Position numbers and translations under genes: made by a program. Below, piece after piece: positions 15,713 through 49,651 of a DNA stretch of 64,000 nt. The stretch lies in the sequence record NC_048077.1, one strand, 5' to 3'. Position 1 is the first letter of the stretch. Each line of letters begins with the position of its first letter. A model generated the notes under the pieces. It did not search any database, was not told the origin of the DNA, and worked only from the letters and a program-made list of their open reading frames with translations.

Positions 15713-17491
15713 TTAGAAAATTTTACGCTTAACCAGAGAATAATAAACTTCGAACGGAGCACCATACAAAGCTGGCCCGCGTTGAGCACGCGCTGTCACT
15801 TTGCCTGTATGAATGTTCAACGCAGTGATTTCTACCGTTGGCTGTTTCGGTCGAATAGTTTCATACACCGGAGTGTTGAATGTCGGATAATCATTGCGTA
15901 AACGTTCGATACTTTCTTCCGCTTCTTTCGACGGCTGCGGGAATTTAAAACGAATCTCAGCAGCACGTTTACCGCGAGCGATAGTCACATAACCTTTCTT
16001 CAAAGGCACGCCGTTATACATCAGATAGGAAGAAATACGACGAGCGATACCGACCACCTGATCGTAAATCGTATCATCCATTACCTGCGCAGAAAAACGA
16101 ATGCCAGTAGGTTGCTGTACCATTGCCAGACGCAAACCAGTGTTGAAATAACCTTCGTCAATCAGGCGACGGAAATAATCATACATCGCTTCTGTTTTGG
16201 AGGCGATAGCCGGAATGTGCAACGGCGGAACGTCAGCTTTCGGTTCAACAAAAGTTGGAGTCTGAACCGGAATAGACATTTTCACAACCTGCGAAACTTT
16301 ATAAGTGTTTTCCAGAATCGGAGTTGTTTTGATCACAACTTTATTCTTGATTGCTTTCTTATAGTTTTCGTCAGTTGTCAGTGAGGTAAACAGACGATAA
16401 TCAACCGGGCTTGTATAGCCGCTAATGATATCGCGCACCAGCGTTTGAAGTTTTGCCTGCGTGTCAGCGAACACAACGCGACTGCGATTAGGCGTGCTCG
16501 GAGATACCGGGAAGAATGCACCGTAAACAGTTTTGATATTGCGCGGTGAACCTGTTCCAGTAACCTTAGTTGCGTTTTCCAGTTTCGGAAGTTTTTCAGC
16601 CTGACCAACAGGCGCAACTTTCGGTGTACTGCGAATCGCTTTACCTTTAACGTAACTCGTCGCTTCCGGATCAACAGACAGATTACTCAGCAGATTTTTA
16701 ACTGCCGAACTATCCATCCAACTCTCAATCGGAACTGCGAGGTTGTGTGCGAGGTAATGTTTCTTGCGGCGCATCAAAACAACAGTGCCTTTCGGAATAA
16801 CAGGCGACAGAATTTTTTTCTTCGTTGTTCCGATATACGCGAACGTATCAGTTTTCAGATCGGACACTTGACCGAATGGAGCGGTGAATTCAAGAGCGCC
16901 CATAATGCTTTGCGCTGTTTCGTGACCGCGAACAATAAACTGAATGCGCGGGCTATCTTTCAGACGCAGATCGTAACGGTCTTTGTTGAGATAGGTAATC
17001 TTAATCAGATCGCCTTTCTCAAGTTCTAGATCGTATTCATCGGAAGCGTCATCAATAGCCAGTTTCTTGCCCGTGTATTTGAGATACTTAGGTGCCGCAC
17101 TTTCAGAACTAACATCCAACACATCAAAAACACGTTGCGAATTTTCAGCGTACTCACGCGCCGCCTGCATTGCAGTGGCGAGGTTAAAGCTGATAGATTT
17201 TTCTTTCGGTGGAACTAACTGAACATGAACGCTACTACTCGCACTCATGAAAACAGTTTGATTATCGTCGCGAGTTCCAGCGAAGTGCATTCCAGTAAGG
17301 CGCTCTACAGCGTCAGCACTAATGCTTTCGTGTGCGATACGATCACCGGGAACAATCTCAGTGATTTCGCCACGGTGCCAAACATAGGCAGCGCGTCCAT
17401 TGTGACCAATAAAGTGATCGCCCACTTTAGAGATTGACCGTGGGATAATCCCTAAGTCAGAAATAACGCGAGAAGGTTTTTGAACAATCAT
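15713..17491 (-). CDS. Hypothetical head-associated protein (paralogous Y-x-x-Y-x-G domain; several S-x-S motifs)
   Basis: 592 aa; N-terminal region has SIS three times and SESA; the following domain aligns by eye with 30097..30765 and 47720..49651. Confidence 0.7.
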   Translation of the reverse strand: MIVQKPSRVISDLGIIPRSISKVGDHFIGHNGRAAYVWHRGEITEIVPGDRIAHESISADAVERLTGMHFAGTRDDNQTVFMSASSSVHVQLVPPKEKSISFNLATAMQAAREYAENSQRVFDVLDVSSESAAPKYLKYTGKKLAIDDASDEYDLELEKGDLIKITYLNKDRYDLRLKDSPRIQFIVRGHETAQSIMGALEFTAPFGQVSDLKTDTFAYIGTTKKKILSPVIPKGTVVLMRRKKHYLAHNLAVPIESWMDSSAVKNLLSNLSVDPEATSYVKGKAIRSTPKVAPVGQAEKLPKLENATKVTGTGSPRNIKTVYGAFFPVSPSTPNRSRVVFADTQAKLQTLVRDIISGYTSPVDYRLFTSLTTDENYKKAIKNKVVIKTTPILENTYKVSQVVKMSIPVQTPTFVEPKADVPPLHIPAIASKTEAMYDYFRRLIDEGYFNTGLRLAMVQQPTGIRFSAQVMDDTIYDQVVGIARRISSYLMYNGVPLKKGYVTIARGKRAAEIRFKFPQPSKEAEESIERLRNDYPTFNTPVYETIRPKQPTVEITALNIHTGKVTARAQRGPALYGAPFEVYYSLVKRKIF

Positions 17492-17500
17492 GACCTGTCC

Positions 17501-17941
17501 TTATAGGGAAATTTTTCGCATTGAGTGTTGTTGGAGAAGTCGAAGATTCCCAAACATCACATTGTATGCAGAGGTTCCATAAGTATGAATGAGTTGGCGA
17601 GGAACGAACGTGCCGAAATAAAGACAGTTAGGATCAAGTTGTGTGATTTCCGTTCCCACGTTTTTATCTACGTTGGAAACCACCCATACCCACGGCTCGG
17701 CAAAGAAACGATCATTGCGAGTGTGGATGCGAAAACCAATTGCCATTTCTCGACCGCGAGGATCAAACGAAAACAAATCAACCGTTCTTTGATTCAGCGC
17801 TTTCTGTACGGTGAACAATGCCATCGTGCGAAACTTTTCAGAGAACTGCGGAATGTGCGCGTTGTCCTTTTCAATCTGCAACAAGATTTTGTCTTGTTGC
17901 TCCTGCGTCAACTTTCCGAAATATTTTATTGCGAAAGGCAT
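17501..17941 (-). CDS. Hypothetical protein
   Basis: 146-aa ORF with GGAGA RBS overlapping the upstream stop. Confidence 0.7.
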   Translation of the reverse strand: MPFAIKYFGKLTQEQQDKILLQIEKDNAHIPQFSEKFRTMALFTVQKALNQRTVDLFSFDPRGREMAIGFRIHTRNDRFFAEPWVWVVSNVDKNVGTEITQLDPNCLYFGTFVPRQLIHTYGTSAYNVMFGNLRLLQQHSMRKISL

Positions 17942-18519
17942 TTCAGAATCTCCCCGACGATTTCCGTAGGAGTTGAATTATCGGTACTGAATACCGCATC
18001 GTAACCGCCCGGTAAATTGCGGTAACGATCTTGATACATTTCAAACGTTTCAGCATCGACCATACGAGCTTCGATATTGTCGCTACCTTCGCGTTTATCG
18101 CCACGACGAGAAACATAAGTTTCGTATGTGCAAGTAAGCAGAATGCTAACTACTTGAACATCCGGACGCAGAATATTAACGGTGCGATCAAACAGCACTT
18201 GCGTCTTATCGTCTTTAACTTGTAGCGCCCACGTTGAAGGCCAAGCACGATCAGTAATGACAACATCAGCAGAAGTTTCTGCAAGGAAATCCATCAGGGA
18301 ACTACGCGCCGCAAGGAAAATCAACATTTCCGTTAACGGCGAACGCGCATTGTTGTCGTGCAATGCAATGTTGCGCAGTTGTTCAGCGAGTGGGGTTGTG
18401 CCGGGTTCGCGAACACGAATAACGCTGATATCACGCAAACGCAGAGACGCCTCTAAAATTTCTGCGGTTGTGGATTTTCCCACACCTTCTGTTCCCTCAA
18501 GGACGATGTATTTTTTCAT
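17926..18519 (-). CDS. tmk: Thymidylate (dTMP) kinase
   Basis: MKKYIVLEGTEGVGKST P-loop, VREPG, VVITDR motifs. Confidence 0.9.
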   Translation of the reverse strand: MKKYIVLEGTEGVGKSTTAEILEASLRLRDISVIRVREPGTTPLAEQLRNIALHDNNARSPLTEMLIFLAARSSLMDFLAETSADVVITDRAWPSTWALQVKDDKTQVLFDRTVNILRPDVQVVSILLTCTYETYVSRRGDKREGSDNIEARMVDAETFEMYQDRYRNLPGGYDAVFSTDNSTPTEIVGEILKCLSQ

Positions 18520-18523
18520 TTGA

Positions 18524-19012
18524 TTACCTAAACTTGCCTCCACGCCATGCAGCATGGATTAGAAGACGGGAAAGGATTTTGTTTGATGTTTCGTGTGCTG
18601 TAGCATTCTTCTTAACTCTGGCATTGCCTAAAGAAGTTACAACAATAATCCCTGCGCCGCTGCCTTTAATGCGAGCAAGAATTTTCTCTCCGTGAGATTC
18701 AAACAAACGCTCAGAAATAACGAAATAAAACTTGTGGCAGTATTCAAAGTATTTGTGCCATTTCTTATCAGAAGAAAAATCAGCCCAACTACTTTTAACC
18801 TCAGAGATTACTACATGACATTTTGTGTTGAGTGACCAAACATCTGCACGTAGATTGCCGTATTTGTTCAAACCAAATTCAATGTGATTAGAATATCTCT
18901 TATCAATCCAGTAACCCACAACTGCTTCCGTTAAAAAGGCAGTTGTCTCGCCACGCGACAAACTTGTGAAAACAACTGCGGGTTTCCTGATTTTAATTCT
19001 TCTACGACGCAC
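18524..19012 (-). CDS. MmcB-like PD-(D/E)xK nuclease
   Basis: RADV...ISEVKSSWADF.SDKKWHKYFEYCHKFYF matches the MmcB family pattern. Confidence 0.8.
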   Translation of the reverse strand: MRRRRIKIRKPAVVFTSLSRGETTAFLTEAVVGYWIDKRYSNHIEFGLNKYGNLRADVWSLNTKCHVVISEVKSSWADFSSDKKWHKYFEYCHKFYFVISERLFESHGEKILARIKGSGAGIIVVTSLGNARVKKNATAHETSNKILSRLLIHAAWRGGKFR

Positions 19013-19454
19013 CTAATTCCAACTTCTTAATTGCCTGTTTAAGAACAGGTTTCCAATCACGATCAATTTTCTTGAGTGCGTCTTCGGCGAGGAACCAACG
19101 GCGCTCGCGTTGAGCAACTTCCAGATAGTTATCAAGTTCTTCATGCACCTGCATCAAAAACCATGTTACTTTCTGGAGTCTTCCGGTACTGCCTTTGACG
19201 TATTCCATTTTGGCAATTTTCTTACCGGGAACACCGCGCAGACCTGCTTCTTCCATTGCTTCTTTAATCGCGCTCGCTTCCAACGAAAGATCCGGCTCTT
19301 TACCGCCTTTTGGTAATCCCCAATTGTTCGCGTGCTTTGTGCGAATCATGCAGATTTCCAGATCACCTTCGTCGTTGTAGCGATAAGGAATAACGCCGCT
19401 CTGTTTACGAGGCTTGCGCCCGTCGCCTTCATCCAGCGTGAGAAAAACTTTCAT
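19002..19454 (-). CDS. Nudix hydrolase (DIPP/Ap6A-like subfamily)
   Basis: SGVIPYR, WGLPKGG, and Nudix box G-x5-E-x7-KEAMEEAG. Confidence 0.9.
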   Translation of the reverse strand: MKVFLTLDEGDGRKPRKQSGVIPYRYNDEGDLEICMIRTKHANNWGLPKGGKEPDLSLEASAIKEAMEEAGLRGVPGKKIAKMEYVKGSTGRLQKVTWFLMQVHEELDNYLEVAQRERRWFLAEDALKKIDRDWKPVLKQAIKKLELGAS

Positions 19455-19957
19455 AGATAATCGTTCGCTCTCGGTTTAGGTTCATCCCAATCCCAAGCAC
19501 GGTCTACCCAAAAACCTGCGTTGGAAAGTGAATCGACTGCGCTACGAATTGTTGAGCTTCCAACAACCACGTATTCAACAACCGTGTTACCGACATTATA
19601 CCCATACTTGTAGTTACCCAAGCAATAGGCAAACGACGACTGTTTTGGATCGAAAAGAATTTCTCCCGACTGACTCACGACGATTGCGCTGCACGGCGCA
19701 CCTTCCGGAACAGTAGAAAGAATTTCAATTCGAGCGAGCGGATTGCGGCGATAGCAACGCTGAACGAATTGAGCACAATCAGCGAACGAACGCGCAATAT
19801 TTGCAGCGCGGCTATCGTTGTATTGATATGCGTCTTCGATGATATTGCGTGCGCCAGTAAGATTAAAGCCAGCAGCGGCAATCATGATAGCCAGCGAAGA
19901 CGGTTCAATCTGCGAAGCAAAAGTGTTTGAACCAAACACTTCCGGAAACGTTTTCAT
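19451..19957 (-). CDS. Hypothetical protein
   Basis: Start refined to MKTFPE (GGGAGA RBS); TAATTT motif upstream. Confidence 0.7.
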   Translation of the reverse strand: MKTFPEVFGSNTFASQIEPSSLAIMIAAAGFNLTGARNIIEDAYQYNDSRAANIARSFADCAQFVQRCYRRNPLARIEILSTVPEGAPCSAIVVSQSGEILFDPKQSSFAYCLGNYKYGYNVGNTVVEYVVVGSSTIRSAVDSLSNAGFWVDRAWDWDEPKPRANDYL

Positions 19958-19983
19958 AAATATCTCCCAATGAATTGTCTTAC

Positions 19984-20881: not shown

Positions 20882-20893
20882 ATAGATATTTCC

Positions 20894-23559: not shown

Positions 23560-23562
23560 AAG

Positions 23563-30096: not shown

Positions 30097-30765
30097 TTAT
30101 TTCTCCACGATGATCAAACATGGACGCATAGCGCCGTCAATTTTAATCATAGCCGCACCGACAATGTAACCACGCGGAATAACTTTCAGCACTGCATCTT
30201 CAAGCGCTTGTTCCCATTTGTCTTTCGGCTTGCCGTCAAAGGGAGTATAAGTATCCGTCGCATCATAGTAATTATAAGTTTCAGTTGTCGGCATCGGGAC
30301 GCCAGCAAGAAACTCTAAACGATTTGCGCCAGAAATTTTCGCTTTACGAATTGCTTCTGTCAGTTTTTTATTTTCTTTGCCGACAGAGTTATCCACTTCG
30401 TAGATACGTGCTTCCATCGGTGCATCTTTTGGCTTAGTAGGAAGTTTTTCTTGAGCCGTGGTATTTGCTTTCTTACCAGTGACTTTGATTCCCTTCACCT
30501 TGCCAGTAAACGGACGCGAACGACCTAACAGAGAGCGTGCAGTTTTAGCGTCAATCAGAAAAACAACATCGGGATCGTCACGATGCAGCACATAGATTTT
30601 ATTCTTAATGATGCACGTACCAAAAACATCTTTGGCTTCGATATCTGCCTCGAAATCTTTGTTCTCGATATAAACTTTTCGAGCACCTTCGAAACGATAC
30701 CAGTCACAATCTTCGATTTTGATTTTCGGTAAACGCGGAGCAGATACACTCACAAAAAACAGCAT
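30097..30765 (-). CDS. Hypothetical head-associated protein (SVSA motif, paralogous domain)
   Basis: MLFFVSVSA N-terminus, then WYRFEG...DVFG...DDPDVVFLID aligning with 47720..49651. Confidence 0.75.
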   Translation of the reverse strand: MLFFVSVSAPRLPKIKIEDCDWYRFEGARKVYIENKDFEADIEAKDVFGTCIIKNKIYVLHRDDPDVVFLIDAKTARSLLGRSRPFTGKVKGIKVTGKKANTTAQEKLPTKPKDAPMEARIYEVDNSVGKENKKLTEAIRKAKISGANRLEFLAGVPMPTTETYNYYDATDTYTPFDGKPKDKWEQALEDAVLKVIPRGYIVGAAMIKIDGAMRPCLIIVEK

Positions 30766-34160: not shown

Positions 34161-34634
34161 TTATTTAATGCGCAGACGCAGACCAGAGGAAGATGATTCA
34201 AACTCACCATCATCATTTGATTCTTCGTCATCGCCTTCGAATTCGAGATCATCGAGTTCGTCATCTTCAATCAGCAAATCATCTTCTTCGTCTTCCGGTT
34301 CATCTTCCGGATCGCCTAGTGAAAGGGATTCGAAATCGTCGCCATCATACAGAGATTGTTGTTTCGCCTTAGAAGTTGTCGTTACCAAAGCAGCAGAAAG
34401 CGCTTGCACGGAATCGGCAAGCGAAGAACTTGCGGCGCTGACTGATTCACAAGGATTTGCACACACATCAATTAGAGTGCTTGCTTCAACGCTATCAGAT
34501 AACTGACACGTTAAGAAATCTTCGCAATCAGGAGCGTGAGCAGCTTGTACCAAAATACGAGCTACATCTTCCCACTGGTTTTCGCGTGCCGCAACAATCG
34601 CAAGAGCAGCTAGGGAACCTGTCAACGTTTTCAT
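34161..34634 (-). CDS. Acidic head-associated protein
   Basis: Follows MCP; D/E-rich C-terminus; SVSA, SLS and SSS motifs. Confidence 0.75.
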   Translation of the reverse strand: MKTLTGSLAALAIVAARENQWEDVARILVQAAHAPDCEDFLTCQLSDSVEASTLIDVCANPCESVSAASSSLADSVQALSAALVTTTSKAKQQSLYDGDDFESLSLGDPEDEPEDEEDDLLIEDDELDDLEFEGDDEESNDDGEFESSSSGLRLRIK

Positions 34635-34725: not shown

Positions 34726-35820
34726 TTATGCGCGTTGTGCTTTAGCCACGGAGCGAACGTTAGCCAGCGTGAAGGAGAACACGCTAGACAGCAGCCAACC
34801 ACGATCAGTAGAACCCTGATTCGCGCCAGAAGTCGGCTGAGACTGAGTGCCGCCGCGAGTGGTGTACATCGCGTGGTAATCCTGATCAGCTACAACGTAC
34901 AGTTCGCCGTCATTCAGAACACGATGTTCCGGAGCGCGGAAACCATCAGTTACCAGATCCAGACCGAGCAGAGTTCCGAGACGACCAGTAGTGATCAGTT
35001 CGTACTTACTTACCGGATCGAGAGCAGAGGTAAACTGATCGTTACCGATAATGTCGTTCCAGTAATCGGCTGCCAGAATCGCAGTGCTTACCGGCATAGG
35101 CCACGCGCTTACTTGCTGTTTCAGAACAGACAGCAGGCGCGGAGTCAGTTCGCCGTGAATGTAAGTTACCGGGTTAGCCATACCGACAGAACGATCCGCC
35201 GCTTCTTTCCAGAGACGATCTTCTGCAACCATGATAGATTGCAGACCGTCTTGCTGCGCACGATCCAGCAGGTCGCCGTTGATCTGTTCCAGATCCATGC
35301 GAGAAACACGGATGATGGATTTCAGTTCAAACTCGTCCGGAGTGAACACACGACCGCGCAGTTGGCGATAACCGTATTCAGAAGGACCGGTTGCAATGAT
35401 TGCCTGGGCCTGGTGAGTTTTCAGTTCCACACGCGGAACGTCGCCCTGACGAACGGTTGCGCCTTTACAGATGCGACGCAGAAGACCTTGACGTTCAGCA
35501 CGGTCTTCGATTGCGCCAACGATACTTGCGCCGAGAGAATCCCACTTCGCCGGATCAGCAGCAGCTTCTTCGATCAGTTGACGGTTTTCTTCGCGAATCT
35601 GATCTTTGGTCATGCCAACGTGAGATTCAGAAACTTCCTGAATGTCGCCGTTTTGTGCGGCGTTCAGCAGTTGGCCGATACGACCGATAAGATCTTTCTT
35701 GCTGATCGCGTTCACTTCGCCAGTCGATTCAGACAGAATACGCTCACCGTTAATTTTCAGATCGTGCAACGGGTCGCCGTTACGCAGAACAACTTTAGCA
35801 CCACGCAGTTGATTTTTCAT
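34726..35820 (-). CDS. Major capsid protein (HK97 fold)
   Basis: 364 aa, strong codon bias, follows scaffold and decoration genes; HK97-like pattern (G.LGTLLGLDLVTD, GELYVVA). Confidence 0.85.
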   Translation of the reverse strand: MKNQLRGAKVVLRNGDPLHDLKINGERILSESTGEVNAISKKDLIGRIGQLLNAAQNGDIQEVSESHVGMTKDQIREENRQLIEEAAADPAKWDSLGASIVGAIEDRAERQGLLRRICKGATVRQGDVPRVELKTHQAQAIIATGPSEYGYRQLRGRVFTPDEFELKSIIRVSRMDLEQINGDLLDRAQQDGLQSIMVAEDRLWKEAADRSVGMANPVTYIHGELTPRLLSVLKQQVSAWPMPVSTAILAADYWNDIIGNDQFTSALDPVSKYELITTGRLGTLLGLDLVTDGFRAPEHRVLNDGELYVVADQDYHAMYTTRGGTQSQPTSGANQGSTDRGWLLSSVFSFTLANVRSVAKAQRA

Positions 35821-36646: not shown

Positions 36647-38605
36647 TTAACGCCCGAAACGACGGCGCAGAATGTCATCGAAAGATTCTTTAGAAGAACT
36701 TTGCGATTCGACGGTTTCCAAACTTTCTTCACGTTCTTCTTTAGAAACGCTAGGAACTTTCGGAGCTTCTTTCGTCTGACGTACAGTACCAGCGGTGCCA
36801 GCAACTGCTTCGGCGATTTCGTTCTGCGCAACTTCGGATTTAGCCATCAGTGCATCAGCCTGAGACAGAGAAGCACGCAGGAAATCTTCCGAGTTGTTAA
36901 AGAATGCACGCTCAACCAGAGGACGCGGATCTGCAATACCTGCATTACGCAGAGTAGCGCAAAGTGATTCAACAACAGGGTTGCTGGAATCGCGCCAGAA
37001 GTTGCGAGTGATGCCGAGCATCGAAGTGGACAGTGCCGCAACGAAACGCTCACGATGAGCTTCGACCATATCGCTAACAGTAGAGTTTACCGTAGAGGAA
37101 ACACTGTTAACGCGAGCGTCAGCTTCCGCAGTCAGCATTTTGCTAACAGACAGTTGCATAACAAAAGGTTCGAAACCAAAGTTTTTGCAGGTTTCTTCAA
37201 CGCCAGCGTTATGCAGAGATTTACTCACGGCGCGAATGAAATCTTCTTTATCGAAGACACGACGCGCAGAATCTTCGCCAGCGGCATTGCTAAAGCTACT
37301 GAAAGTAGCGCGTGCAATAGGTTGACCGTCATAGAACAGGTGAACCGCAGGAACACGACCGTTAACAGTGCGAGAGATAGAAACCAGCGACGGATCGAGA
37401 TTTTCATGTTCTGCTTTAACAGCAGACAGGCTATCGAAAGAGCGAACTTCCGCAGCGGTTTCGTCGTTGGCATTCAGATTACGAACAGAACTTTCGGATT
37501 CGAAATCTTCGTCTTCTTCATCGTCGAAATCGTCATCCTCATCTTCCTCTTCGTCGTCGTCGAATTCTTCATCATCGAATTCTTCTTCGTCGTCGAAGTC
37601 ATCTTCTTCGTCGTCATCATCGCCGGAGCAGGACGTTTTAGATTTGGATTCAGAGTCGAAATCTTCGTCGTCCTCTTCTTCCTCATCATCGAATTCTTCA
37701 TCATCGAATTCTTCGTCGTCCTCTTCTTCGTCTTCGTCGGAAGAAGATTCAGAATCAAACTCTTCGTCATCTTCCTCTTCTTCGTCTTCGTCGAAGCCTT
37801 CGTCGTCTTCCAGTTCCTCTTCTTCCAGAATATCAGAAGAATCATCGTCACTGCTTTCAGAAGCAATGTCGATCAGCGGTGCGGAACAGTGAGCGCAGAA
37901 AACGGTGTCATCATCGGTTGCGATGGTGAACGGAGCCGCGCAATTTGCAGAGCAAGAATATACGTGAGCTTCCAGTTTACCGTTCGAAGACAGCGCCTGA
38001 ATTTCTTCGCTTTCCAGAACTTTGGATTCGCTAATAGGCAGACAGCTATACGGATCGAAGTGAACGCCATCAGCGCAAGCAACAAAACTTGTTGCGGAGG
38101 ACAGAGCAGTAACTACGTCCTGTTTGCGAATCGCGTTAGCCAGATTCTGTTTTGCGTTTGCCAGCGTAGTACCCACGGCAACAACAGAAGAACGAGAAAC
38201 AGATTCTTTGTTTTCGTTTTCCATGTGGTCGAGAATACGATCATCAGAAACTTCTTCCAGACTTGCAGAGCAAGACGGGCAATGCGTAATATTCGCACTG
38301 CTATCGCTAACGATGTGGCAACCACAACCATCTAAACAGATGTGATATTGTGCTTTCACGTTAGCGGCAGAAGATTCGGATTGGAATTCGGCCTGCGCCA
38401 CCAACTCAGCGTCTTCTTCAAGCAGCTTAGTGCTGCCTTTCGGATCGAAAAGGTCAACGTTGCTTTGCGAAGCATATACGTCGCCGCTTTCAGAACGGTA
38501 GAACATGGAGTTCTGACCAGTTGCAGTTTTGCGGAAGTTTTCGACTGCTTGAGCGTGGCTGCCACCGACACTAACAATCCCCGCCAGACGGGTAGTTTTA
38601 GGCAT
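36647..38605 (-). CDS. Prohead scaffold/core protein with zinc ribbons and long acidic tract
   Basis: CxxC motifs (CPSC, CAHC), about 130-aa D/E tract, coiled-coil C-terminus; between protease and MCP. Confidence 0.7.
   Translation of the reverse strand: MPKTTRLAGIVSVGGSHAQAVENFRKTATGQNSMFYRSESGDVYASQSNVDLFDPKGSTKLLEEDAELVAQAEFQSESSAANVKAQYHICLDGCGCHIVSDSSANITHCPSCSASLEEVSDDRILDHMENENKESVSRSSVVAVGTTLANAKQNLANAIRKQDVVTALSSATSFVACADGVHFDPYSCLPISESKVLESEEIQALSSNGKLEAHVYSCSANCAAPFTIATDDDTVFCAHCSAPLIDIASESSDDDSSDILEEEELEDDEGFDEDEEEEDDEEFDSESSSDEDEEEDDEEFDDEEFDDEEEEDDEDFDSESKSKTSCSGDDDDEEDDFDDEEEFDDEEFDDDEEEDEDDDFDDEEDEDFESESSVRNLNANDETAAEVRSFDSLSAVKAEHENLDPSLVSISRTVNGRVPAVHLFYDGQPIARATFSSFSNAAGEDSARRVFDKEDFIRAVSKSLHNAGVEETCKNFGFEPFVMQLSVSKMLTAEADARVNSVSSTVNSTVSDMVEAHRERFVAALSTSMLGITRNFWRDSSNPVVESLCATLRNAGIADPRPLVERAFFNNSEDFLRASLSQADALMAKSEVAQNEIAEAVAGTAGTVRQTKEAPKVPSVSKEEREESLETVESQSSSKESFDDILRRRFGR
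37500..37860. repeat. Low-complexity acidic-codon repeat (TCATCATCGAATTCTTC-like units)
   Basis: Imperfect tandem units encoding EEFDD/DEEDDEE. Confidence 0.75.
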
Positions 38606-38688: not shown

Positions 38689-39792
38689 TTAAAGCGTCCG
38701 GCTTTCAATATCTTCATCCGGAATATAGCGGTTTACGAAGTATTTTTCGACTACCTCAATTCCGTTTAGTGCATAAACTTTTCGCAAACTATCTCCCCAA
38801 ACCATCAGTTCGGCAAGCGTAGCGAAATGTTCCATTGCCATCGTGTTTTTCCCGGCGGCAACGTTTCGTATTGGATGAATGTCTTTGCCTGCGATTGCCG
38901 CTTTGAATTTCATTCTATCCACATTTCGAAGTAAGGTTGTATCAATGAAATGCGCCAGTTCATGAGTAATAACATGAGCAACGCTTTTACTATTGAAACC
39001 GCCCAACAACTTAACGATTTGTTTCGGGTCGAGGATGATTACACCGTACTGAACGCCCTGATAACGAGTGTTCAAAATAAAGCATCCATCATCACTTAAA
39101 CCGAGTCCGATAAACAAACGTTTAAACGGCAACGGAACTTTTAATCCGATTGCTGGCATAACGTTGTCCTGAATATCTTGCATTACATAATCAGGGCAAG
39201 AGCGAGCGGATATACTGGAGCGCAAACCTGTTTTCAAATAATCCTCGTAGCTTTGAACTTCGAGTTTTACTTTGCCGCATTTCTCCAGTTTCTTCACTTC
39301 GTAGTTATTAATGCTGCCGCCACCGTAAACAGTGTTCGCGTATTTCAGCGGCTTTAACTGTTTATAGTTAACGTGGCCTTTTTCCTGAACCTCCTGCGCA
39401 CGTCGCGTATTTGCAACTTCTTCCGTTTCGTTAGAAACAGGTGCTGGAGCAGGAACAGCACTTTTATTCACCTGCGAAGGATAAGCTGTAGGTGCCGGAA
39501 TCGGCGCAGCAATTTCAGGCTTCGGAGTCTCCGAAACGTTCGCTTCTGGTATATCGAAATTAAAATTTTCAGGAAAAAGTTTCGAAGGATTTGCAGTAAA
39601 TTCACGAGAATCTTCGCGTACCTTATTTCCTATTTCAATGGATACCGGAACCACTTGTGATTGTTTTGGACTGGCAATATAAGCAACGCCATCACCAAAC
39701 GCAATGCCAACAACATCACGCGTAGTTATTTCCACTCCATTGGATCTCAGCGGTTCCCCGCCTAAATAACGATAGAAAGTAAAATCTCTCAT
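38689..39792 (-). CDS. Zinc metallopeptidase-like protein (HExxH)
   Basis: HVITHELAHFID plus downstream MEHFA third-ligand motif; Pro/Ala linker; N-terminal paralogous domain. Confidence 0.7.
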   Translation of the reverse strand: MRDFTFYRYLGGEPLRSNGVEITTRDVVGIAFGDGVAYIASPKQSQVVPVSIEIGNKVREDSREFTANPSKLFPENFNFDIPEANVSETPKPEIAAPIPAPTAYPSQVNKSAVPAPAPVSNETEEVANTRRAQEVQEKGHVNYKQLKPLKYANTVYGGGSINNYEVKKLEKCGKVKLEVQSYEDYLKTGLRSSISARSCPDYVMQDIQDNVMPAIGLKVPLPFKRLFIGLGLSDDGCFILNTRYQGVQYGVIILDPKQIVKLLGGFNSKSVAHVITHELAHFIDTTLLRNVDRMKFKAAIAGKDIHPIRNVAAGKNTMAMEHFATLAELMVWGDSLRKVYALNGIEVVEKYFVNRYIPDEDIESRTL

Positions 39793-40610
39793 CGGCGTTT
39801 AATCTGCATCAGTTGGTTGACTTCGGTTGCAGCACATGCGAATGCAGGATCATCAACAGAACTACATTCAAAACCAGTGAGCAACAAACAGTTACGATAT
39901 GCGAGACGGCCTGAACGCACATCAAGTTTCGTAGGCACATTGAATGCAGTATGTTCGCAGAAGTTACGAGTTTTAGGCGTAACCAAACGACCGCAAATAC
40001 TACACTCATACGCTTTGTAAGTTGTGCCTTTCGAATAGGTGTTCAGTTCACCCGAAAGAATACGGCGGCAACGTTCCGGTTCAAGCGTGCGGTCAAATGC
40101 CAGCAGCAAACTCAGAACAGCGTGATTACCACGGAAACCAACCAGCGGAGATAAATGACTATCAAAAATAATTCCGCGTGCTTTGGTGTAGTCTTTGTTC
40201 GCGTGTTCAATAAAAGTTGGTTTTCCTTTAAAAGTTTGGAACGCCAGCTTTCCTTGATCCGGGTTAAAGCGCAACCATTCTTCTTTCGAGAATCCATCGC
40301 CGTTGGTGTTCGGCAATTCAGTTACGTTAACCGGAACCGGAACAATGATATAATCGCGAATATCTTTCGACGTGTTATAAACTTCCGCAGCTTTCGGCAA
40401 CCACACATTGATATCCAGCATCAAATCACTGGATGCGCCAATGCGATTACCTGCAATGCGAATAGATTTATTATCGCGAGAGGCTTCTTCTTTATGAAGA
40501 TCGATTGGTGCCATTCCGGTGTGTTGCGTAGAACTCAGGTCGAAAGATTTACTTTCAACAGAATTGCTAATTGCCGCAACCGTTCCTTCATTTTTAAGTC
40601 GGATTGTCAT
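39789..40610 (-). CDS. Prohead maturation protease
   Basis: PNTNGDGF, FKGKPTFIEH, GIIFDS, G.ECSSVDDPA; upstream of scaffold/MCP. Confidence 0.8.
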   Translation of the reverse strand: MTIRLKNEGTVAAISNSVESKSFDLSSTQHTGMAPIDLHKEEASRDNKSIRIAGNRIGASSDLMLDINVWLPKAAEVYNTSKDIRDYIIVPVPVNVTELPNTNGDGFSKEEWLRFNPDQGKLAFQTFKGKPTFIEHANKDYTKARGIIFDSHLSPLVGFRGNHAVLSLLLAFDRTLEPERCRRILSGELNTYSKGTTYKAYECSICGRLVTPKTRNFCEHTAFNVPTKLDVRSGRLAYRNCLLLTGFECSSVDDPAFACAATEVNQLMQIKRR

Positions 40611-43039: not shown

Positions 43040-43049
43040 AAGTGTTTCC

Positions 43050-43967
43050 TTAGATTTGAATGTTACCAGAGTCCGTCCAGCGAATGCCATAACGTTCTAC
43101 AACCGTGAATTCGATTTCAGTAAACTTATTGAGATCGAGTTGACGGAAAGTTTTCGTAGGATCAGCAGGAAGCGGAGTTTGTTTTGTTTCAGTATACAGG
43201 TTGAGTTTAATCACAACATCGCCAGCAAGATGTTGTGGCTTGAATGTCTGCGCAGTGTCTTCCAACAAACCGCTCGCGAGAATATCGTCAAAGAAAGTAT
43301 TGACGGTCATCGACAAGCCGCTATTTAGAATAGTTGGCGCGAATGCTAAAACTTGATCATAGAACGAACGGTTCCACGATGTATTACCAATTAGTGTTCG
43401 CTGTTTTTTGATTCGGGTAACTTTGCCGTCTTTCACTTCTCGATACTGATCGTAATACCACGCAGCATACACCATATGAACATGCGGTAAATTCATTGTA
43501 TCGAAATCAAACGCAGGGGCAACAACCATGCGGTGTTGAGTGCGATCAATATTGCGACGGAAAACATTCAACGAATATTCGTAACCGCGACGGCAATTGA
43601 TTGTCAGATTGCTGACAACTGATTGCTGATAGCCATTAGTAACGGCATACGCAAAACAATCTTGCCCAACGAAACCAGCGAGCGGCGTATAGATAAAACT
43701 CTCGCCATCAACGGAAAGTTTTACGGAGCCGTGTATAGGTTGACTGATAGGAATTAAAGTTAATCGCCATCCACGCTGAACAGGAACTTTATCGAGAACC
43801 CCCTCGCTAGGGGATTCCGATGTTTTAAAATCGCGTGCGCCCTGAATCATAATAGAGCGCAGCGGAATTTCAAAGTCTACGTTGTTCGGCGTTTCAAGCG
43901 TGAGAGCAGGTGCTACAGGAACATCATTACGCCAGTAGTCTACAACACACGGTTTTGAAATCATCAC
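43050..43967 (-). CDS. Virion protein with cadherin/Ig-like domain
   Basis: QPIHGSV...GESFIYTP..GFVGQD.F.Y.V.NG Ig-like (Big_9/cadherin) signature. Confidence 0.75.
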   Translation of the reverse strand: MMISKPCVVDYWRNDVPVAPALTLETPNNVDFEIPLRSIMIQGARDFKTSESPSEGVLDKVPVQRGWRLTLIPISQPIHGSVKLSVDGESFIYTPLAGFVGQDCFAYAVTNGYQQSVVSNLTINCRRGYEYSLNVFRRNIDRTQHRMVVAPAFDFDTMNLPHVHMVYAAWYYDQYREVKDGKVTRIKKQRTLIGNTSWNRSFYDQVLAFAPTILNSGLSMTVNTFFDDILASGLLEDTAQTFKPQHLAGDVVIKLNLYTETKQTPLPADPTKTFRQLDLNKFTEIEFTVVERYGIRWTDSGNIQI

Positions 43968-45934
43968 GTCACCTTGTATTTCTTTTTAAACTGATCGATG
44001 GTGTAAATCGGAATGCCCTTGTCCATCGCTTTCTGAACTTTGCTACTACCGCTTCCCGGATCTTTCGCAATCAGAACAGTAGTGTCTGCCTTCATACTAT
44101 CCGATGCGGTGCCGCCCAATTCAACGATACGCGCTTTCAAGTCTGCATCACGCACGCCAGTAAATGCTACGTTAACGCCATTCAGTTTACTGCTTTTCAC
44201 CACAACTTTCTTCGGAGCCTTCAACTTGATGCCAATTTCTTGCGCCAAATCGTAAGCATTAATACAAGCATTAGAAATCTTAGGTGCGAGAGATTTAATG
44301 CCATGAATGCCGCTAATGAGTTCGGTCAAATCAGAACGACGTTTAAGCAGTTTCTGGATATCAGGAATTTCATCAACAACTTTATCGAATGAAGTGTTTG
44401 CACCACGCATGAAATACGGAGCACACGCTTTAAGCCACACGTTCAATTCGATTCCTGAAAGAATTGTTTTGTTGTGCTTCGCGATCTGTTTGCCGCGAGC
44501 GTCACCCAAAATCCCACGTAACGTAGGCAGACCGCAAAGAATGAGTGACTTAGGATCTTTGATTCCGCTTTCCATCAGCAGATTCGCAGTCTTGTCGCCA
44601 GCGTTAGAATATCCCGCAGCAGCCATGAAACTCTCAAGAAGTTTTGCATCAGCAGTAGCAGATTTTTTCTTAACGCGAAACTCAACGCCTTCCATTGTAT
44701 ACGGAACATCAGGAAGTTTCGCTTTCTTCGCAGGCCGCACGATTTCTTGAATGTACGGAATAACTTTGTTACTACGCACAAGTTTTACTTTCGCGCCGAT
44801 GCCCAACGGACGTTTTTCATGAGGCGGTTTCTGTCCTTTCTTCGTTGGTTTCAGATAGCCATGCTCAATATAATATCCGTTGTGACCATTAGCGCGATTG
44901 ATCGTAATGCCGCCGGGAACAACTACAGGTTCCACAATAACAACCGGAGCAAGCACGCCGTATTTTGTTTCCTGATAAACGATATCTTTCACCGTAGTAA
45001 TAACGCTATCCGCACTCGTATTCATTTTGAATTTGAATTCGTGTTTAGGATTGCTGCCAGTAGACTTAGGAGAAGGAATGTTATCGGACACCACAAGGCC
45101 ATCCAATTCATATTTGGATTTGCGCATACGGTCTTCGATCATCGTTACCAATTGTTCTTCGGTAAGATCATCAAATGGCCCAAAGTGGCGAACCACAGTG
45201 AAGCCGTATTGTTTCAGCAGTTTGAATTGATCGCTTTTCTTTTTAGTTGCAGCGCTGCCGCCGATTATACCGAAACAAACGAGATCGATATGTTTGATTT
45301 CTTTCGGCGATTCAAAGCGTCGCATAAGCCCAACAGAAGCCGGACGAGCAGAAGTATACTCATAATCGCCCGGAGCATCTTTGTGAAGCGTTGCCATAAA
45401 TTTCTTCTGACTGATTAGCGCCTCGCAACGAACAATAAAACGTTCTTTCGTTGGAATCTTTTTCGGGATGTTGAACGAAGCCAAATGACGCGTAACGTCT
45501 TTGCCTTTCATACTATCGCCGCGAGTGTACGCAGCAACAGGAACACCCTTTTCATAAATCAACTCAATGCTCTGACCATCCAACTTATCGCTAACGATTT
45601 TACTGTTACCGTTGCTCAGATGTTTTGCGAGAGCAGGAGAAGAAAGTTTCAGTTGATTCAGACTCGCCATAGGAACCGGAAGCGGAACATCGCTGTCATC
45701 ATGCGAGCCGATCTTTTTAGCCAGCGTAGATTTAGGCCAGCGTTCAGAAATATAATCGCGAATCGTGTCGTAAATGGTATCGTCAACAAGCGGCTGCCCC
45801 TCATCATATGCGTCGTCGAAAGCATTGATGAGTTTTTTCGCCTGCGTCAGATTAAGAGTTTCCATTACTTTGATGGGATTCTTTTCTAATCGTTTTAGGC
45901 TTATACTGGCTGAAATACTTTTGAAATCAGTCAT
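43964..45934 (-). CDS. ligA: NAD-dependent DNA ligase (no C4 zinc finger, with BRCT)
   Basis: YDEGQPLVDD.IYD (domain Ia), KLDG, TRGD, ELDGLVV, OB-fold, C-terminal BRCT (VAFTG...LGG...SSKVQKA..KGIPI). Confidence 0.95.
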   Translation of the reverse strand: MTDFKSISASISLKRLEKNPIKVMETLNLTQAKKLINAFDDAYDEGQPLVDDTIYDTIRDYISERWPKSTLAKKIGSHDDSDVPLPVPMASLNQLKLSSPALAKHLSNGNSKIVSDKLDGQSIELIYEKGVPVAAYTRGDSMKGKDVTRHLASFNIPKKIPTKERFIVRCEALISQKKFMATLHKDAPGDYEYTSARPASVGLMRRFESPKEIKHIDLVCFGIIGGSAATKKKSDQFKLLKQYGFTVVRHFGPFDDLTEEQLVTMIEDRMRKSKYELDGLVVSDNIPSPKSTGSNPKHEFKFKMNTSADSVITTVKDIVYQETKYGVLAPVVIVEPVVVPGGITINRANGHNGYYIEHGYLKPTKKGQKPPHEKRPLGIGAKVKLVRSNKVIPYIQEIVRPAKKAKLPDVPYTMEGVEFRVKKKSATADAKLLESFMAAAGYSNAGDKTANLLMESGIKDPKSLILCGLPTLRGILGDARGKQIAKHNKTILSGIELNVWLKACAPYFMRGANTSFDKVVDEIPDIQKLLKRRSDLTELISGIHGIKSLAPKISNACINAYDLAQEIGIKLKAPKKVVVKSSKLNGVNVAFTGVRDADLKARIVELGGTASDSMKADTTVLIAKDPGSGSSKVQKAMDKGIPIYTIDQFKKKYKVT

Positions 45935-45957
45935 GGAAATTCCCTCTGCAAATATCC

Positions 45958-46881
45958 TTAAACATTTACAGTTTCAGCGATGCGATTCGCAATAAAATCA
46001 GGAACCGCATTCATCGTAAGACCATTGCGTTTTGCCAACATGATAAAGGCTTCCGCATATTTCAATTGCTGACTCCCAACACCACCAAATTGACGAGCGT
46101 TGAGCAGGCGGCGCGACAATTCTGACACGACTGTTTGACGTGTACGGAAACCGGAGTTAATGCTTCGCAGCATTTGAAAATACTTGTGAACATCGGATTT
46201 GATAGAGAAAGTTTTGATGCCACTGAAATCTTTTCGAATAGCAGCATGGAGCAGAACTAAGAAAGGATATAAATCTTCTTTCTGTCTGGCTTCCTTTTCT
46301 TTTTCAATGTCCTTGATAAAATCAGGACGGTTATCAGGTTCCGGAGTTTCCTTGCCATTCAATGTGGAAGTGATTTCGTTAAAAAGCGAAATGCGTTTGG
46401 TCGGACGGCGTGACAGCATATCTTTCTTGCTGCCGTAAAAGTAAACCGGAATATTTCTTTTGCGAGCCTGCAAAGCAATGCCGCGAAAATACATCCCATT
46501 ACTTTTAATTCGCGCTTCTTCTTTCGTTCCAACGTTGCAGTGAATCTCTTTAACGATACTGATATCAATGTCCGGCTTGTCGCTGATAATGCGTTCTTCG
46601 GATTCAGAGTAATCAGCACCGTTCTGCCAGAAATCGACAGGCACAACTTTAAAGCGTGACCGGATTTTATTTGCATCCAAAACAAACAAAACTTCCGATC
46701 CGCCATTAGTTCTTATCGCGAAAATATTACTTAGCGTGCGGGTAGTGGAAAGGAAGAAGAGTCTGTTTTGAGAGAACTCTTCTTCCGCATCGCTTCCGGA
46801 GGCAATGCTCAAATGAAATTTTCCACTTCCCACAATACTCAGCGCGTTTTTCGGCGAAGTAAAGTGGAAGAGTGTATTCAT
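45958..46881 (-). CDS. ADP-ribosyltransferase-fold-like protein, paralog 2
   Basis: LFHFT..KNALSI..G, FLSTTR, ESEER motifs; paralog of the adjacent gene. Confidence 0.55.
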   Translation of the reverse strand: MNTLFHFTSPKNALSIVGSGKFHLSIASGSDAEEEFSQNRLFFLSTTRTLSNIFAIRTNGGSEVLFVLDANKIRSRFKVVPVDFWQNGADYSESEERIISDKPDIDISIVKEIHCNVGTKEEARIKSNGMYFRGIALQARKRNIPVYFYGSKKDMLSRRPTKRISLFNEITSTLNGKETPEPDNRPDFIKDIEKEKEARQKEDLYPFLVLLHAAIRKDFSGIKTFSIKSDVHKYFQMLRSINSGFRTRQTVVSELSRRLLNARQFGGVGSQQLKYAEAFIMLAKRNGLTMNAVPDFIANRIAETVNV

Positions 46882-47720
46882 ATATCTTTAATTGCCTCAT
46901 AAATAAAACGAGGAATACCCGCGATTGTAATGCCTTGCTGTTTCGCAAGAATCGCGAGAGCACGCGGAGTTTTCACACGCGAATCATCACTAGGATAATT
47001 GCGAGAGTTTCCGATATCATTACGCAGACCAGTTGCCAGTTCGTTGTAACGATATTGATCGCCGTAGCTTCCACGAATTTTATCGTAGATGTAAGCAACT
47101 TCACTATCACCCTGCTTTAAAAGTTTGGGGATAGTTTTATTGATCGCTGCGTGCATCAATTGAAGCCACGGCATCACGTAGTCTTTACGGCTACGCGGAA
47201 TATAACCGCCACGAATGATTTTAGATTTCGCCAGAATGCGCGGATCGTTCAGAGGCACACGGCGCTCTTTACGCATCGAGATCATATCTTTCTGGTTATT
47301 GTATGCGAACACGCTAATCTTTCGACGAGCGCACGCCAGCACCAGATCACGCAGATATTTTCCGTCATCGTTACGATCCAAGTTAATGTGAACCGCAATA
47401 ATAAACGGCGAAGCCGGAATACTAGGCTTGTCAGTAATCAAACGTTCCTCAGCTTCGGAATATTTGTGATTCGCCCAATAGTCCATCGGTTCAAGTTTGT
47501 AACGGGATTCAAGGGCGCGTCCATCCAGTTCAAACATTACGCCGTGTGCCTTATCAGCAAACGCATTGCTTCGTGTGCGAGTAAGAGAAAGATAAAACAA
47601 TTTTCCCTTATTGATAACCTCGTCAGATTCAGCAGCGTCAGCCATACTCAAAAAGAAACGGTTGTCAGTAACAATCTGCGCCGCTTTGTGAGTTTGAGTG
47701 AAGTGATATAAAGGTTTCAT
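46878..47720 (-). CDS. ADP-ribosyltransferase-fold-like protein, paralog 1
   Basis: LYHFT, YLSLTR, EAEER motifs. Confidence 0.55.
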   Translation of the reverse strand: MKPLYHFTQTHKAAQIVTDNRFFLSMADAAESDEVINKGKLFYLSLTRTRSNAFADKAHGVMFELDGRALESRYKLEPMDYWANHKYSEAEERLITDKPSIPASPFIIAVHINLDRNDDGKYLRDLVLACARRKISVFAYNNQKDMISMRKERRVPLNDPRILAKSKIIRGGYIPRSRKDYVMPWLQLMHAAINKTIPKLLKQGDSEVAYIYDKIRGSYGDQYRYNELATGLRNDIGNSRNYPSDDSRVKTPRALAILAKQQGITIAGIPRFIYEAIKDI

Positions 47721-49651
47721 CAGCTTACAATAGGTTCCTTGTTGACTTCAAACTCTTCTGACATATCGTACACGCGAGCGAATAGAGTTGGTTTCATATC
47801 CTTCACATGTTCTGCAATATCGAAAAGACTTTGTTTGCGGGCTTTATTGATTCGCACCTGACGAACTTCGTCCGGGCTATTAGTGATATCGTAAAGCGTG
47901 TAAACAATAATGCTGTCCGAAGATTTATGAGGCGCTTCGCGAAGAATTACCCATTCACGTTTGAGTTTTTCATCGGCTTTAAACACCACAATATCGCCTG
48001 CTTCCGGATTCGCCAATTTCTCTGGCGTGCCTTTATTTTCTGTAGCTTGTTTTTTAGCAAGTTCAGCGGCCTCCTGTTCAGCGTTGAGAACATCCTCATC
48101 GACTTCATCGGAATCAGTTTCATCAATATCAGCAGCGTCGTCTTCGGAATCCGCTTCTTCTTCATCCTCGGAATCTTCTTCATCCTCAGAATCAGTGTCT
48201 TCCTCAGAATCAGTGTCTTCCTCAGAATCAGTGTCTTCGTCCGGATCTTCTTCCTCTTCGTCATCCGTTTCTTCTTCTGAATCGGTATCATCCTCTTCAT
48301 CAGTGTCTTCGTCCGGATCTTCTTCCTCTTCGTCATCCGTTTCTTCGTCGTCCGTTTCCTCAGAATCGTCTTCTGATTCAGTATCATCCTCAGAATCTTC
48401 TTCCTCTTCCGGAGCAGGTTTCGCTACCTTAGATTTTTTCTTAACTTTCGATGGCGGCGCTTCTTCCTCTTCGTCTTCTGGTTCTTCTTCAACATCAGAC
48501 AAATCGAAATCACTTTCTACGGAATCAGAATCATCGCCGTCGCCAAACATGGAACCAATTACAGAATCAATTCCCATGTTGTCACTTGCGAATGGACGTG
48601 CAGAAAGAATATCTTCAAGCGGAGCAAACATATCGTCTTCCTCTGCCTGTTCTTCTTCAACTACATCCATATCCAGAACTTCGTCGAGATCTTCTTCGAG
48701 TTCTTCTTCTGCCAGAATAGATTTAATCTGGTTGCGCAGACGCACGGTAGGAATCGCATTCTCTTCCGTGTCAAACGTGCGAGGTTTAGCAGAAGGCGCT
48801 TCCATTTCACCACGTTTGATTTTCTCTTTCATTTCGTCGTAGCGCTCTTGTTCTGCGCGAGAATTTTCTTTTTGTGCGCGTTTGGCTTCACGGGCAGAAA
48901 TTTCTTTAGCAAGTTTTTCCGCACGCTGTTCAAGACGTGCAGCCTCACGCTGTTCAACCTGCGTGCGATGTTTCATTTTCTTGCTATCGGCGCGGTACGC
49001 TTTAACGTCTGCATCAGACAGCGTGCCATTAGGCCAATCCTGAATCGGCATAACGAGAGTTTCCGTAACCACTTTATCGTAGTTTTCCGGAGTGAGTTTT
49101 AAATACATCCCTTTCTCGTTAATAATAACGCCGCCTTTCGCATCGCGAATGTAGCGCATACCTATCATTTCGTTCTTTTTCAGAATCTCTTTGCCTTTAG
49201 TGTGCGTAACGGTCAAAGACATTTCCGGAACGATACGCCATTGATAGTTGCTAAAATCAATGCCGTTTTTATATTCGTTTGGAACAGTGCGCGGAGCAAA
49301 TCGAGCATTGTCGAAATTCTTACGCTGCAACTGACGTTCCGTAGTTTTAACGCCGCGTGCTTTTGCGCGTCCTTCGCGCTGAACAATATCAGGCAGCTTA
49401 CGCAATTTTGTTGCACGCTCTAACAACTGATTCCCGTTCTTCTTATCGAGCGGGAAATTGATATGAGGCATATCAGGAAAAATAAGAGTGAAACGAGATC
49501 CGCTTTTAAGAGACTTAACGCCAAAGATATCGCCCTCGCGAATCATGCGTTTGTGAGTACGTTCCGAAACTTCTTTGCCGCGTTGCCCTGTATACTTAAA
49601 CCAGTTGTATTCGCTAACCGCTTCGTCATATGTAGCCGACTGAGAGAGCAT
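47720..49651 (-). CDS. Head-associated protein with paralogous N-terminal domain and ~200-aa acidic disordered tract
   Basis: MLSQSA start; WFKYTG domain; D/E tract; C-terminal SH3-like segment. Confidence 0.8.
   Translation of the reverse strand: MLSQSATYDEAVSEYNWFKYTGQRGKEVSERTHKRMIREGDIFGVKSLKSGSRFTLIFPDMPHINFPLDKKNGNQLLERATKLRKLPDIVQREGRAKARGVKTTERQLQRKNFDNARFAPRTVPNEYKNGIDFSNYQWRIVPEMSLTVTHTKGKEILKKNEMIGMRYIRDAKGGVIINEKGMYLKLTPENYDKVVTETLVMPIQDWPNGTLSDADVKAYRADSKKMKHRTQVEQREAARLEQRAEKLAKEISAREAKRAQKENSRAEQERYDEMKEKIKRGEMEAPSAKPRTFDTEENAIPTVRLRNQIKSILAEEELEEDLDEVLDMDVVEEEQAEEDDMFAPLEDILSARPFASDNMGIDSVIGSMFGDGDDSDSVESDFDLSDVEEEPEDEEEEAPPSKVKKKSKVAKPAPEEEEDSEDDTESEDDSEETDDEETDDEEEEDPDEDTDEEDDTDSEEETDDEEEEDPDEDTDSEEDTDSEEDTDSEDEEDSEDEEEADSEDDAADIDETDSDEVDEDVLNAEQEAAELAKKQATENKGTPEKLANPEAGDIVVFKADEKLKREWVILREAPHKSSDSIIVYTLYDITNSPDEVRQVRINKARKQSLFDIAEHVKDMKPTLFARVYDMSEEFEVNKEPIVS
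48184..48346. repeat. Tandem 18-bp repeat x3 plus ~46-bp duplication
   Basis: CCTCAGAATCAGTGTCTT at 48184, 48202 and 48220; CAGTGTCTTCGTCCGGATCTTCTTCCTCTTCGTCATCCGTTTCTTC at ~48229 and 48301. Confidence 0.85.

Follow-up and report, generated by a model that had tools for sequence, protein, structure and literature searches.

A conserved serine tag and the KMPT-N domain as a candidate head-loading unit in jumbo phages of the PaBG group

Introduction

Why should four scattered genes of one phage carry the same small domain, and why should the same short serine motif stand directly in front of it? The question is raised by a 64,000-nucleotide stretch of sequence record NC_048077.1 (the window), which corresponds to bases 62001-126000 of the 255,356-bp genome of a Dickeya solani jumbo phage. 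This genome is identical to vB_DsoM_JA11/JA33, genus Salmondvirus (JA11 below); positions are those of the window unless the genome is named. The original prediction, made by eye, noted the domain in four genes, in three of them after an S-x-S-A motif, and proposed that it is a modular address for cargo of the phage head. Here the domain is identified as KMPT-N (Pfam PF20294), its association with the motif is found to be conserved among related jumbo phages, and the two together are tentatively proposed to mark proteins that are loaded into the head.

JA11 groups with PaBG, Lu11, Y3 and NCTB. Published work (PMC7412058, PMC6143709) places it with PaBG and Lu11, which are Pseudomonas phages, with Y3, Yoloswag and Alexandra, which are Erwinia phages, and with NCTB. 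A phiKZ-like origin was therefore rejected, and since the phage lies outside that lineage, any likeness to the internal head paralogues of phiKZ is one of analogy only.

Results

KMPT-N is shared by four genes

All four open reading frames were verified at the coordinates below, all on the minus strand, and all match Pfam PF20294 above its curated gathering cut-off of 28.9 bits, which bears out the claim that they have a domain in common.

47720..49651, minus strand: P0001 (JA11 gp139, 643 residues), with a tag, KMPT-N, a basic stretch, a hyper-acidic tract and a small C-terminal domain
49634..49645, minus strand: S-Q-S-A in the N-terminal tag of P0001, kept in relatives of the acidic type
49415..49609, minus strand: KMPT-N of P0001, found by Pfam, by six-frame scan (65 bits) and by the family profile
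48038..48733, minus strand: hyper-acidic D/E/S/T tract of P0001, residues 307-538
30097..30765, minus strand: P0002 (gp121, 222 residues), with a tag, KMPT-N, a basic linker and an alpha/beta C-terminal domain
30739..30750, minus strand: S-V-S-A in the N-terminal tag of P0002
30517..30708, minus strand: KMPT-N of P0002, modelled as an SH3-like barrel, found by Pfam and six-frame scan
15713..17491, minus strand: P0003 (gp104, 592 residues), with a 128-residue N-terminal region, S-x-S-A, KMPT-N and a C-terminal region of about 390 residues
17315..17326, minus strand: second conserved S-x-S-A of P0003 (S-I-S-A), residues 56-59
17096..17107, minus strand: internal S-E-S-A directly upstream of the P0003 domain
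16904..17089, minus strand: KMPT-N of P0003, found by Pfam, by six-frame scan and by the family profile
38689..39792, minus strand: P0004 (gp130, 367 residues), with KMPT-N, a Pro/Ala-rich linker, a second KMPT-N and a zincin-like metallopeptidase
39607..39783, minus strand: first KMPT-N of P0004, without a preceding tag, found by Pfam and six-frame scan
39205..39216, minus strand: S-I-S-A preceding the second KMPT-N of P0004, kept only in close JA-type relatives
39007..39189, minus strand: second KMPT-N of P0004, below threshold at 23.8 bits
38950..38964, minus strand: H-E-L-A-H zinc-binding motif of P0004, residues 277-281

In the Pfam scan the domain spans residues 15-79 of P0001 (E = 4e-17, 62.5 bits), 20-83 of P0002 (E = 7.5e-15, 55.3 bits), 135-194 of P0003 (E = 2e-12, 47.5 bits) and, as the first copy, 4-62 of P0004 (E = 2.7e-16, 59.9 bits). 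The copy in P0004 had been described as weaker, and by this measure it is not. As a sequence family KMPT-N is not new, being catalogued in Pfam as the 'KTSC and Metallopeptidase N-terminal fusion domain'.

A scan of all six frames of the genome (255 kb) returned the four open reading frames, the second, sub-threshold copy in P0004, and one false positive at genome position 190179, within a RecA-like P-loop region. The second P0004 copy lies above threshold in the orthologues from Y3 (44 bits) and Yoloswag (56 bits); a possible second copy in P0001, at about residues 147-192, is non-significant (independent E-value 7.4). The original prediction had suggested a search with a hidden Markov model, and one built from 88 family representatives recovers the same four open reading frames and nothing else, with E-values down to 5e-27. 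P0001 and P0002 also cross-match in PHROG, and pairwise identity is only 17-24%. On these profile matches, a single homologous module, about 65-80 residues long, is common to the four genes.

Among 1.8 billion representative proteins only 92 clusters match the profile, and the members that can be placed derive from phages or phage-like contigs. KMPT-N is present in every relative examined, with five copies in Y3, five in Yoloswag, three or four in NCTB, three in PaBG and one in Motura. In the literature we found no paper on the function of KMPT-N, and the papers on KTSC make no mention of it.

A serine motif precedes the domain

As had been noted, S-x-S-A stands upstream of the domain in P0001 (residues 3-6), P0002 (residues 6-9) and P0003 (residues 129-132). 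It additionally precedes the second copy in P0004 (residues 193-196), so that four of the five occurrences in the four proteins are directly upstream of a KMPT-N copy. The motif is well kept in orthologues: S6, S8 and A9 of P0002 are invariant across 29 orthologues with identity down to 46%, and the Y3 orthologue of P0001 has S-E-S-A at the tag position. Both S-x-S-A positions of P0003 are kept in five cluster representatives of its type, with identity down to 34%; S131 and A132 are invariant at the one, and at the other S56 is invariant and S-[IV]-S-A is found in four of the five.

Across the family, S-x-S-A lies at most 26 residues upstream of the domain in 47 of the 88 representatives. It occurs 47 times in 1,701 upstream residues, versus 13 times in 34,980 residues from other parts of these proteins, and is thus enriched 74-fold. 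Most representatives without the exact motif have near variants (for example S-L-S-K, A-L-S-A or E-A-x-A-A), and the internal KMPT-N of distant relatives is preceded by the form F-[DE]-S-L-S-A. The distance from the motif to the first aromatic residue of the domain has its mode at 9 residues (21 of 46). The serine codons are a mixture of TCN and AGY, which implies that selection acts on the peptide. Judged by this conservation, the association of S-x-S-A with KMPT-N is real, strongly conserved and not a matter of chance.

The middle position of the motif can be E, L, I, V, T, Q or M. A Glu-specific cleavage (after L-S-E, followed by S) was considered and rejected, since the Glu is not conserved.

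The tag extends beyond KMPT-N proteins

The N-terminal form of the motif is M-x-h-x-h-S-h-S-A, and in JA11 this tag is also carried by proteins that have no KMPT-N: gp164 (1944 residues), gp176, gp177, gp179, gp180 and gp188-gp191. An N-terminal h-x-S-h-S is found in 11 JA11 proteins, among them gp176, gp179, gp180 and gp188-gp191, compared with 1.4 +/- 1.3 in shuffled proteins, and S-x-S-A falls within the first 16 residues of 10 real open reading frames of the genome. By this count the tag is shared by at least 10 unrelated proteins. In Y3 the tag is on the gp164 orthologue and on several non-orthologous small accessory proteins.

The tagged, helicase-like gp164, at 138246-144080 of the genome and thus outside the window, is the orthologue (tblastn E = 0) of PaBG gp202, a 221-kDa helicase-like protein identified in purified virions by mass spectrometry (PMC7412058, Table 1). 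S-x-S-A starts all three orthologues, from PaBG, JA11 and Y3. Given that PaBG gp202 is the largest band of the PaBG virion proteome, this giant helicase-like protein appears to be packaged. Because the tag is present on proteins without KMPT-N, one of them orthologous to a virion protein, it is a better counterpart of the capsid-targeting sequence of phage T4 than the domain is: the peptide of 7-9 residues would be the better candidate for an address or cleavage signal than the 65-residue domain. If the address is shifted to the tag in this way, KMPT-N is left with the role of an adaptor.

Some further proteins have tag-like peptides. The NAD-dependent DNA ligase gp136 (43964-45934) begins with about 9 residues that contain S-I-S-A; the Y3 ligase does not have this peptide, its start matching residue 10-11 of gp136. 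Either the start of the JA11 gene is mis-called or its ligase has acquired the tag. PaBG gp83, gp219 and gp220 (L003, L006) have an N-terminal variant tag that ends in E-A-x-A-A. Of these, gp83 has been detected by mass spectrometry of virions. Some metagenomic members (P0091, P0112) have this variant upstream of KMPT-N.

Partner domains and gene neighbourhoods

The remaining parts of the four proteins differ from each other, as originally noted. P0001, an orthologue of PaBG gp217, has the acidic tract (118 D+E in 226 residues). P0004 has an HExxH...E zincin in which T276, E278, A280, H281 and the downstream E321 are invariant in 35 sequences, H277 being kept in at least 90%; a PDB sequence search with P0004 gave nothing meaningful. 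The partner of P0002 is the alpha/beta C-terminal domain, and for the C-terminal part of P0003 the ESM Atlas gave no usable match. All four genes are in late, structural clusters: P0002 is flanked by two tail-tube-like genes, P0003 adjoins baseplate genes, P0001 adjoins sheath-like genes, and the start of P0004 overlaps the stop codon of the head maturation protease gene, an arrangement of translational coupling.

In the family, the P0002 type (about 220 residues, kept in every relative) and the P0003 type (with an internal domain) are recurrent architectures, and the hyper-acidic tract of the P0001 type is found in about 20 clusters. SprT-like metallopeptidase fusions make up 10 of the 59 members scanned, including PaBG gp89. 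There are also zincins of the P0004 type, one KTSC fusion and one thioredoxin-like fusion. In three of the 59, KMPT-N is preceded by Tad6 (PF25188, E down to 7e-39), and tag-like peptides separate the two domains. Tad6 is an anti-Thoeris domain, binding ThsB and inhibiting the type I system (PMC13728456). From their architectures, tag and KMPT-N form a portable unit that is attached to very different partners across PaBG/Lu11/Y3-type jumbo phages, and the variable partners look effector-like, as would fit host-directed effectors. The literature that we found does not record the acidic-tract, Tad6, P0002-type and P0003-type architectures, the S-x-S-A tag, or the internal positions of the domain.

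The Tad6-KMPT-N fusions are the proteins P0045, P0046 and P0109, with one such gene at 1813-3234 of a TARA ocean contig (L019). The gene for P0109 is preceded by an MmcB-like gene and a small open reading frame (about 140 residues), and the neighbours of P0003 in JA11 are likewise an MmcB-like gene and a small open reading frame, with a thymidylate kinase gene between. These shared neighbours hint weakly that the first 128 residues of P0003 may have diverged from a Tad6-like domain. The full-length hhalign comparison of P0003 with P0109 (E = 1.4e-6) is carried by KMPT-N; the N-terminal region aligns collinearly, scoring on its own an E of 0.029 and a probability of 1.7%, with no Pfam match, so that its likeness to Tad6 is not significant by itself.

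Two relatives have a small KMPT-N gene beside the portal gene: gp146 of Motura (L008, 5923-6210) adjoins it, and gp107 of PaBG (72240-72794) has the portal on one side and the large terminase on the other. MuF/gp7-type head proteins are encoded at this position in other phages.

Predicted structure of the domain

An AlphaFold2 model of P0002 was made from a 47-sequence alignment and has a mean predicted local distance difference test score (pLDDT) of 85. The tag (residues 1-8) has a pLDDT below 50 and is predicted to be disordered. Residues 17-95, with a pLDDT above 90, are modelled as a six-stranded barrel with one helix and three short strands. Its closest structural matches are to SH3-type barrels: the SH3 domain of Pex13 (probability 0.89, but Foldseek E 0.16), the SH3b domain of the NlpC/P60 enzyme 2evr (Z 5.9, 68 residues aligned, root mean square deviation 3.6) and FeoA (Z 4.2), all within the noise range of the tool. 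In the model KMPT-N reads as an SH3-like fold, a small barrel with a helix behind it, which is not proven kinship. For the C-terminal domain of P0002 only generic alpha/beta matches were obtained (Z up to 6.2); matches to neck and terminator proteins (Z 4.2-4.7) are within the noise range of the tool. The isoelectric point of the domain ranges from 5.3 to 10.1 across proteins, and a basic stretch follows it in three of the four.

Candidate cleavage sites in head proteins

The window also contains a head gene cluster in which serine sites similar to the tag are found.

39789..40610, minus strand: gp131, annotated as head maturation protease (PHROG 18299, E = 1.7e-113), candidate enzyme for the S-x-S sites
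36647..38605, minus strand: gp129, acidic scaffold-like protein with five h-x-S-h-S sites, between the protease/P0004 pair and the capsid gene
34726..35820, minus strand: major capsid protein, with S-E-S at about residues 65-67, the expected end of the N-terminal propeptide
34161..34634, minus strand: gp126, small acidic protein adjoining the capsid gene, with F-E-S-L-S-L and S-V-S-A

Internal h-x-S-h-S sites concentrate in gp129 and gp126, and the F-D-S-L-S-A site of gp129, which has the form seen before the internal KMPT-N of distant relatives, is kept in Y3. Two S-x-S-A of gp129 that lie in C-x-x-C contexts resemble zinc-ribbon knuckles and were excluded as sites. In the capsid proteins of JA11, Y3 and Yoloswag there is an S-[EQ]-S at about residue 65-69. 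The capsid protein of PaBG loses about 20% of its mass on maturation, and the cut would therefore fall near this position. The observations on protease, capsid protein, gp129 and gp126, together with the coupling of P0004 to the protease gene, fit the motif as a candidate site of the head maturation protease.

We add some observations on these and similar proteins. Near the N-terminus of gp131 and of Y3_143 there is an S-[EK]-S-F-D, which could be a self-cleavage site, and gp131 has a zinc-finger-like C-x-x-C...C-x-H near residues 200-220, with weak PDB zinc-finger matches. The counterpart of gp129 is PaBG gp82; gp129 has an acidic tract of about 150 residues and two zinc-ribbon-like C-x-x-C pairs, and it is annotated as 'ATPase' (PHROG 20988), yet has no Pfam match. 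A second local enrichment of sites is found outside the window, beside the head-tail connector gene, in gp169 and gp172 (genome 146556-150949), with three and two internal h-x-S-h-S.

Discussion

A head-loading signal and an adaptor

The idea of a modular address for head cargo holds up in so far as the domain is modular, its partners vary, its genes lie in virion-gene clusters and S-x-S-A is conserved; what falls away is the phiKZ framing. In its present form, the proposal is that tag and domain together mark head-loaded proteins, the tag being a targeting and/or processing signal and KMPT-N an adaptor. We regard this as quite possible, at a confidence that stays somewhat short of even. The serine tag would be a signal for head loading, for processing by the prohead protease, or for both, having a role like that of the T4 sequence with a different sequence. 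Tags at the N-terminus would be trimmed off, and internal tags, as in P0003 and the Tad6 fusions, would mark the points at which a precursor is split. KMPT-N would remain attached to the cargo and, as an adaptor, tether it to something inside the head, for example scaffold, portal or DNA. Metallopeptidase, polyanionic tract and anti-defence domains would be packaged as such cargo and would reach the host together with the DNA.

Several points weigh against this proposal. In PaBG, none of the three KMPT-N proteins is among the 14 abundant gel-band proteins identified by mass spectrometry (PMC7412058). P0004 lacks a tag in front of its first KMPT-N copy, and the internal S-I-S-A of this protein is conserved in close relatives only. 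With a spacing fixed at 9 residues, tag and barrel could instead be parts of a single structural unit, and the structural matches of the domain are weak (Foldseek E 0.16; Z 5.9), falling within what is stated as noise for the tool. As for the enzyme, gp131 is labelled a protease by PHROG and annotation alone, with no Pfam or PDB sequence match, and the S-x-S at the capsid site is missing in PaBG, NCTB and Motura. The T4 prohead protease cuts at L/I-x-E, and the motif here has no such Glu. The prohead protease of SPN3US cuts after Glu as well, at A-X-E (PMC10052503).

A bolder form of the proposal is a clade-wide head-loading cassette, in which the protease cuts a new h-S-h-S/A site, N-terminal tags are trimmed and Tad6-KMPT-N precursors split, and a dose of anti-defence cargo, made up of a Thoeris inhibitor, proteases of the SprT-like and zincin types and a DNA-like polyanion, is co-injected with the DNA. 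Taken as a whole, with all of these parts together, we think it unlikely.

Alternative explanations

The domain might instead serve effectors that are never packaged. KMPT-N would then be a nucleic-acid- or substrate-binding accessory domain of cytoplasmic anti-host proteins, bringing for example SprT-like DNA-dependent proteases, KTSC or Tad6 to DNA or host targets, and S-x-S-A would be its N-terminal extension. The near-constant spacing of about 9 residues agrees with this, as does the basic stretch behind the domain in three of the four proteins, and SH3-like barrels frequently bind nucleic acids. The Pfam name itself derives from fusions with KTSC and metallopeptidases, and the SprT-like fusions (10 of 59) together with those to Tad6, KTSC and thioredoxin-like domains point the same way. 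In the view favoured by Iyer et al., the SprT-like peptidases of jumbo phages act on host targets. However, the tag heads many proteins that have no KMPT-N, including the orthologue of a virion protein, and is disordered in the model; the domain is not consistently basic, as its range of isoelectric points makes clear; and the four genes are in late virion clusters, not among early genes. We consider this explanation rather unlikely.

The four proteins could also be ordinary parts of tail, baseplate or head that share KMPT-N as a docking domain, acting on the virion exterior or only in assembly and not being injected. Their neighbours would suit such a role, P0002 lying between tail-tube-like genes, P0003 beside baseplate genes and P0001 beside sheath-like genes, and so would the retention of P0002-type proteins in every relative and the weak match of the P0002 C-terminal domain to neck and terminator proteins (Z 4.2-4.7). 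That match, however, is within the stated noise range. Structural parts would not be expected to carry a metallopeptidase, a polyanion of 230 residues or Tad6, and the small KMPT-N gene of PaBG and Motura adjoins the portal, outside the tail cluster. This account seems to us distinctly improbable.

That resemblance and motif are a chance likeness seen by eye, as the pairwise identity of just 17-24% might suggest, is already refuted by the Pfam scan (E down to 4e-17), the family profile (E down to 5e-27), the PHROG cross-matches between P0001 and P0002, and a motif that does not vary among orthologues and whose enrichment ahead of the domain is 74-fold, and the probability of such a likeness is negligible.

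Comparison with known systems

Head loading by tag and KMPT-N, as proposed here, has a parallel in T4, where, as PMC10052503 relates from Mullaney and Black (1996), the capsid-targeting sequence consists of about 10 N-terminal residues of internal proteins and is removed by the gp21 protease. JA11 is similar in that unrelated proteins share a short N-terminal peptide, in the nearby gene for a head maturation protease and in the concentration of sites in scaffold-like proteins. The two peptides have no similarity in sequence, however, and the JA11 motif is serine-based, with no Glu at the presumed cut. A folded domain of 65 residues usually comes after the tag in this family, and T4 has no such domain.

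A second parallel is the MuF domain of the SPP1 gp7 type, an N-terminal head domain of polymorphic toxins and polyvalent proteins (PMC5512222). Both systems combine a conserved N-terminal module with variable C-terminal effectors, and the small KMPT-N gene of PaBG and Motura is portal-adjacent, as gp7 is. MuF itself was not found in the four proteins (Pfam scan, E up to 0.1); the KMPT-N fold is a different, small beta-barrel, and the JA11 genes are scattered and not linked to the portal.

In phiKZ and SPN3US, paralogous ejection and inner-body proteins are cut at S/A/G-X-E or A-X-E (PMC10052503). JA11 is likewise a jumbo phage, and processing and packaging are possible for its several paralogous proteins. 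It differs in lineage and in motif, and its paralogy is limited to one small domain, not extending over whole proteins. Finally, within PF20294, P0004 and PaBG gp89 show the metallopeptidase fusion that gave the family its name, and P0001-P0003 carry other partners.

Significance

If the head-loading proposal fails, what remains is four new members of a known Pfam family. As it stands, a catalogued domain gains a concrete candidate function, from its conserved tag, the presence of that tag on the orthologue of a virion protein, and partners that include domains with known or likely anti-host roles. If the proposal is true, it would define the signal for capsid targeting and maturation in a large and little-studied group of jumbo phages, whose hosts are plant pathogens and environmental bacteria. 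The genome of such a phage would then be enough to predict its injected proteome, and the heads could be used to carry foreign proteins.

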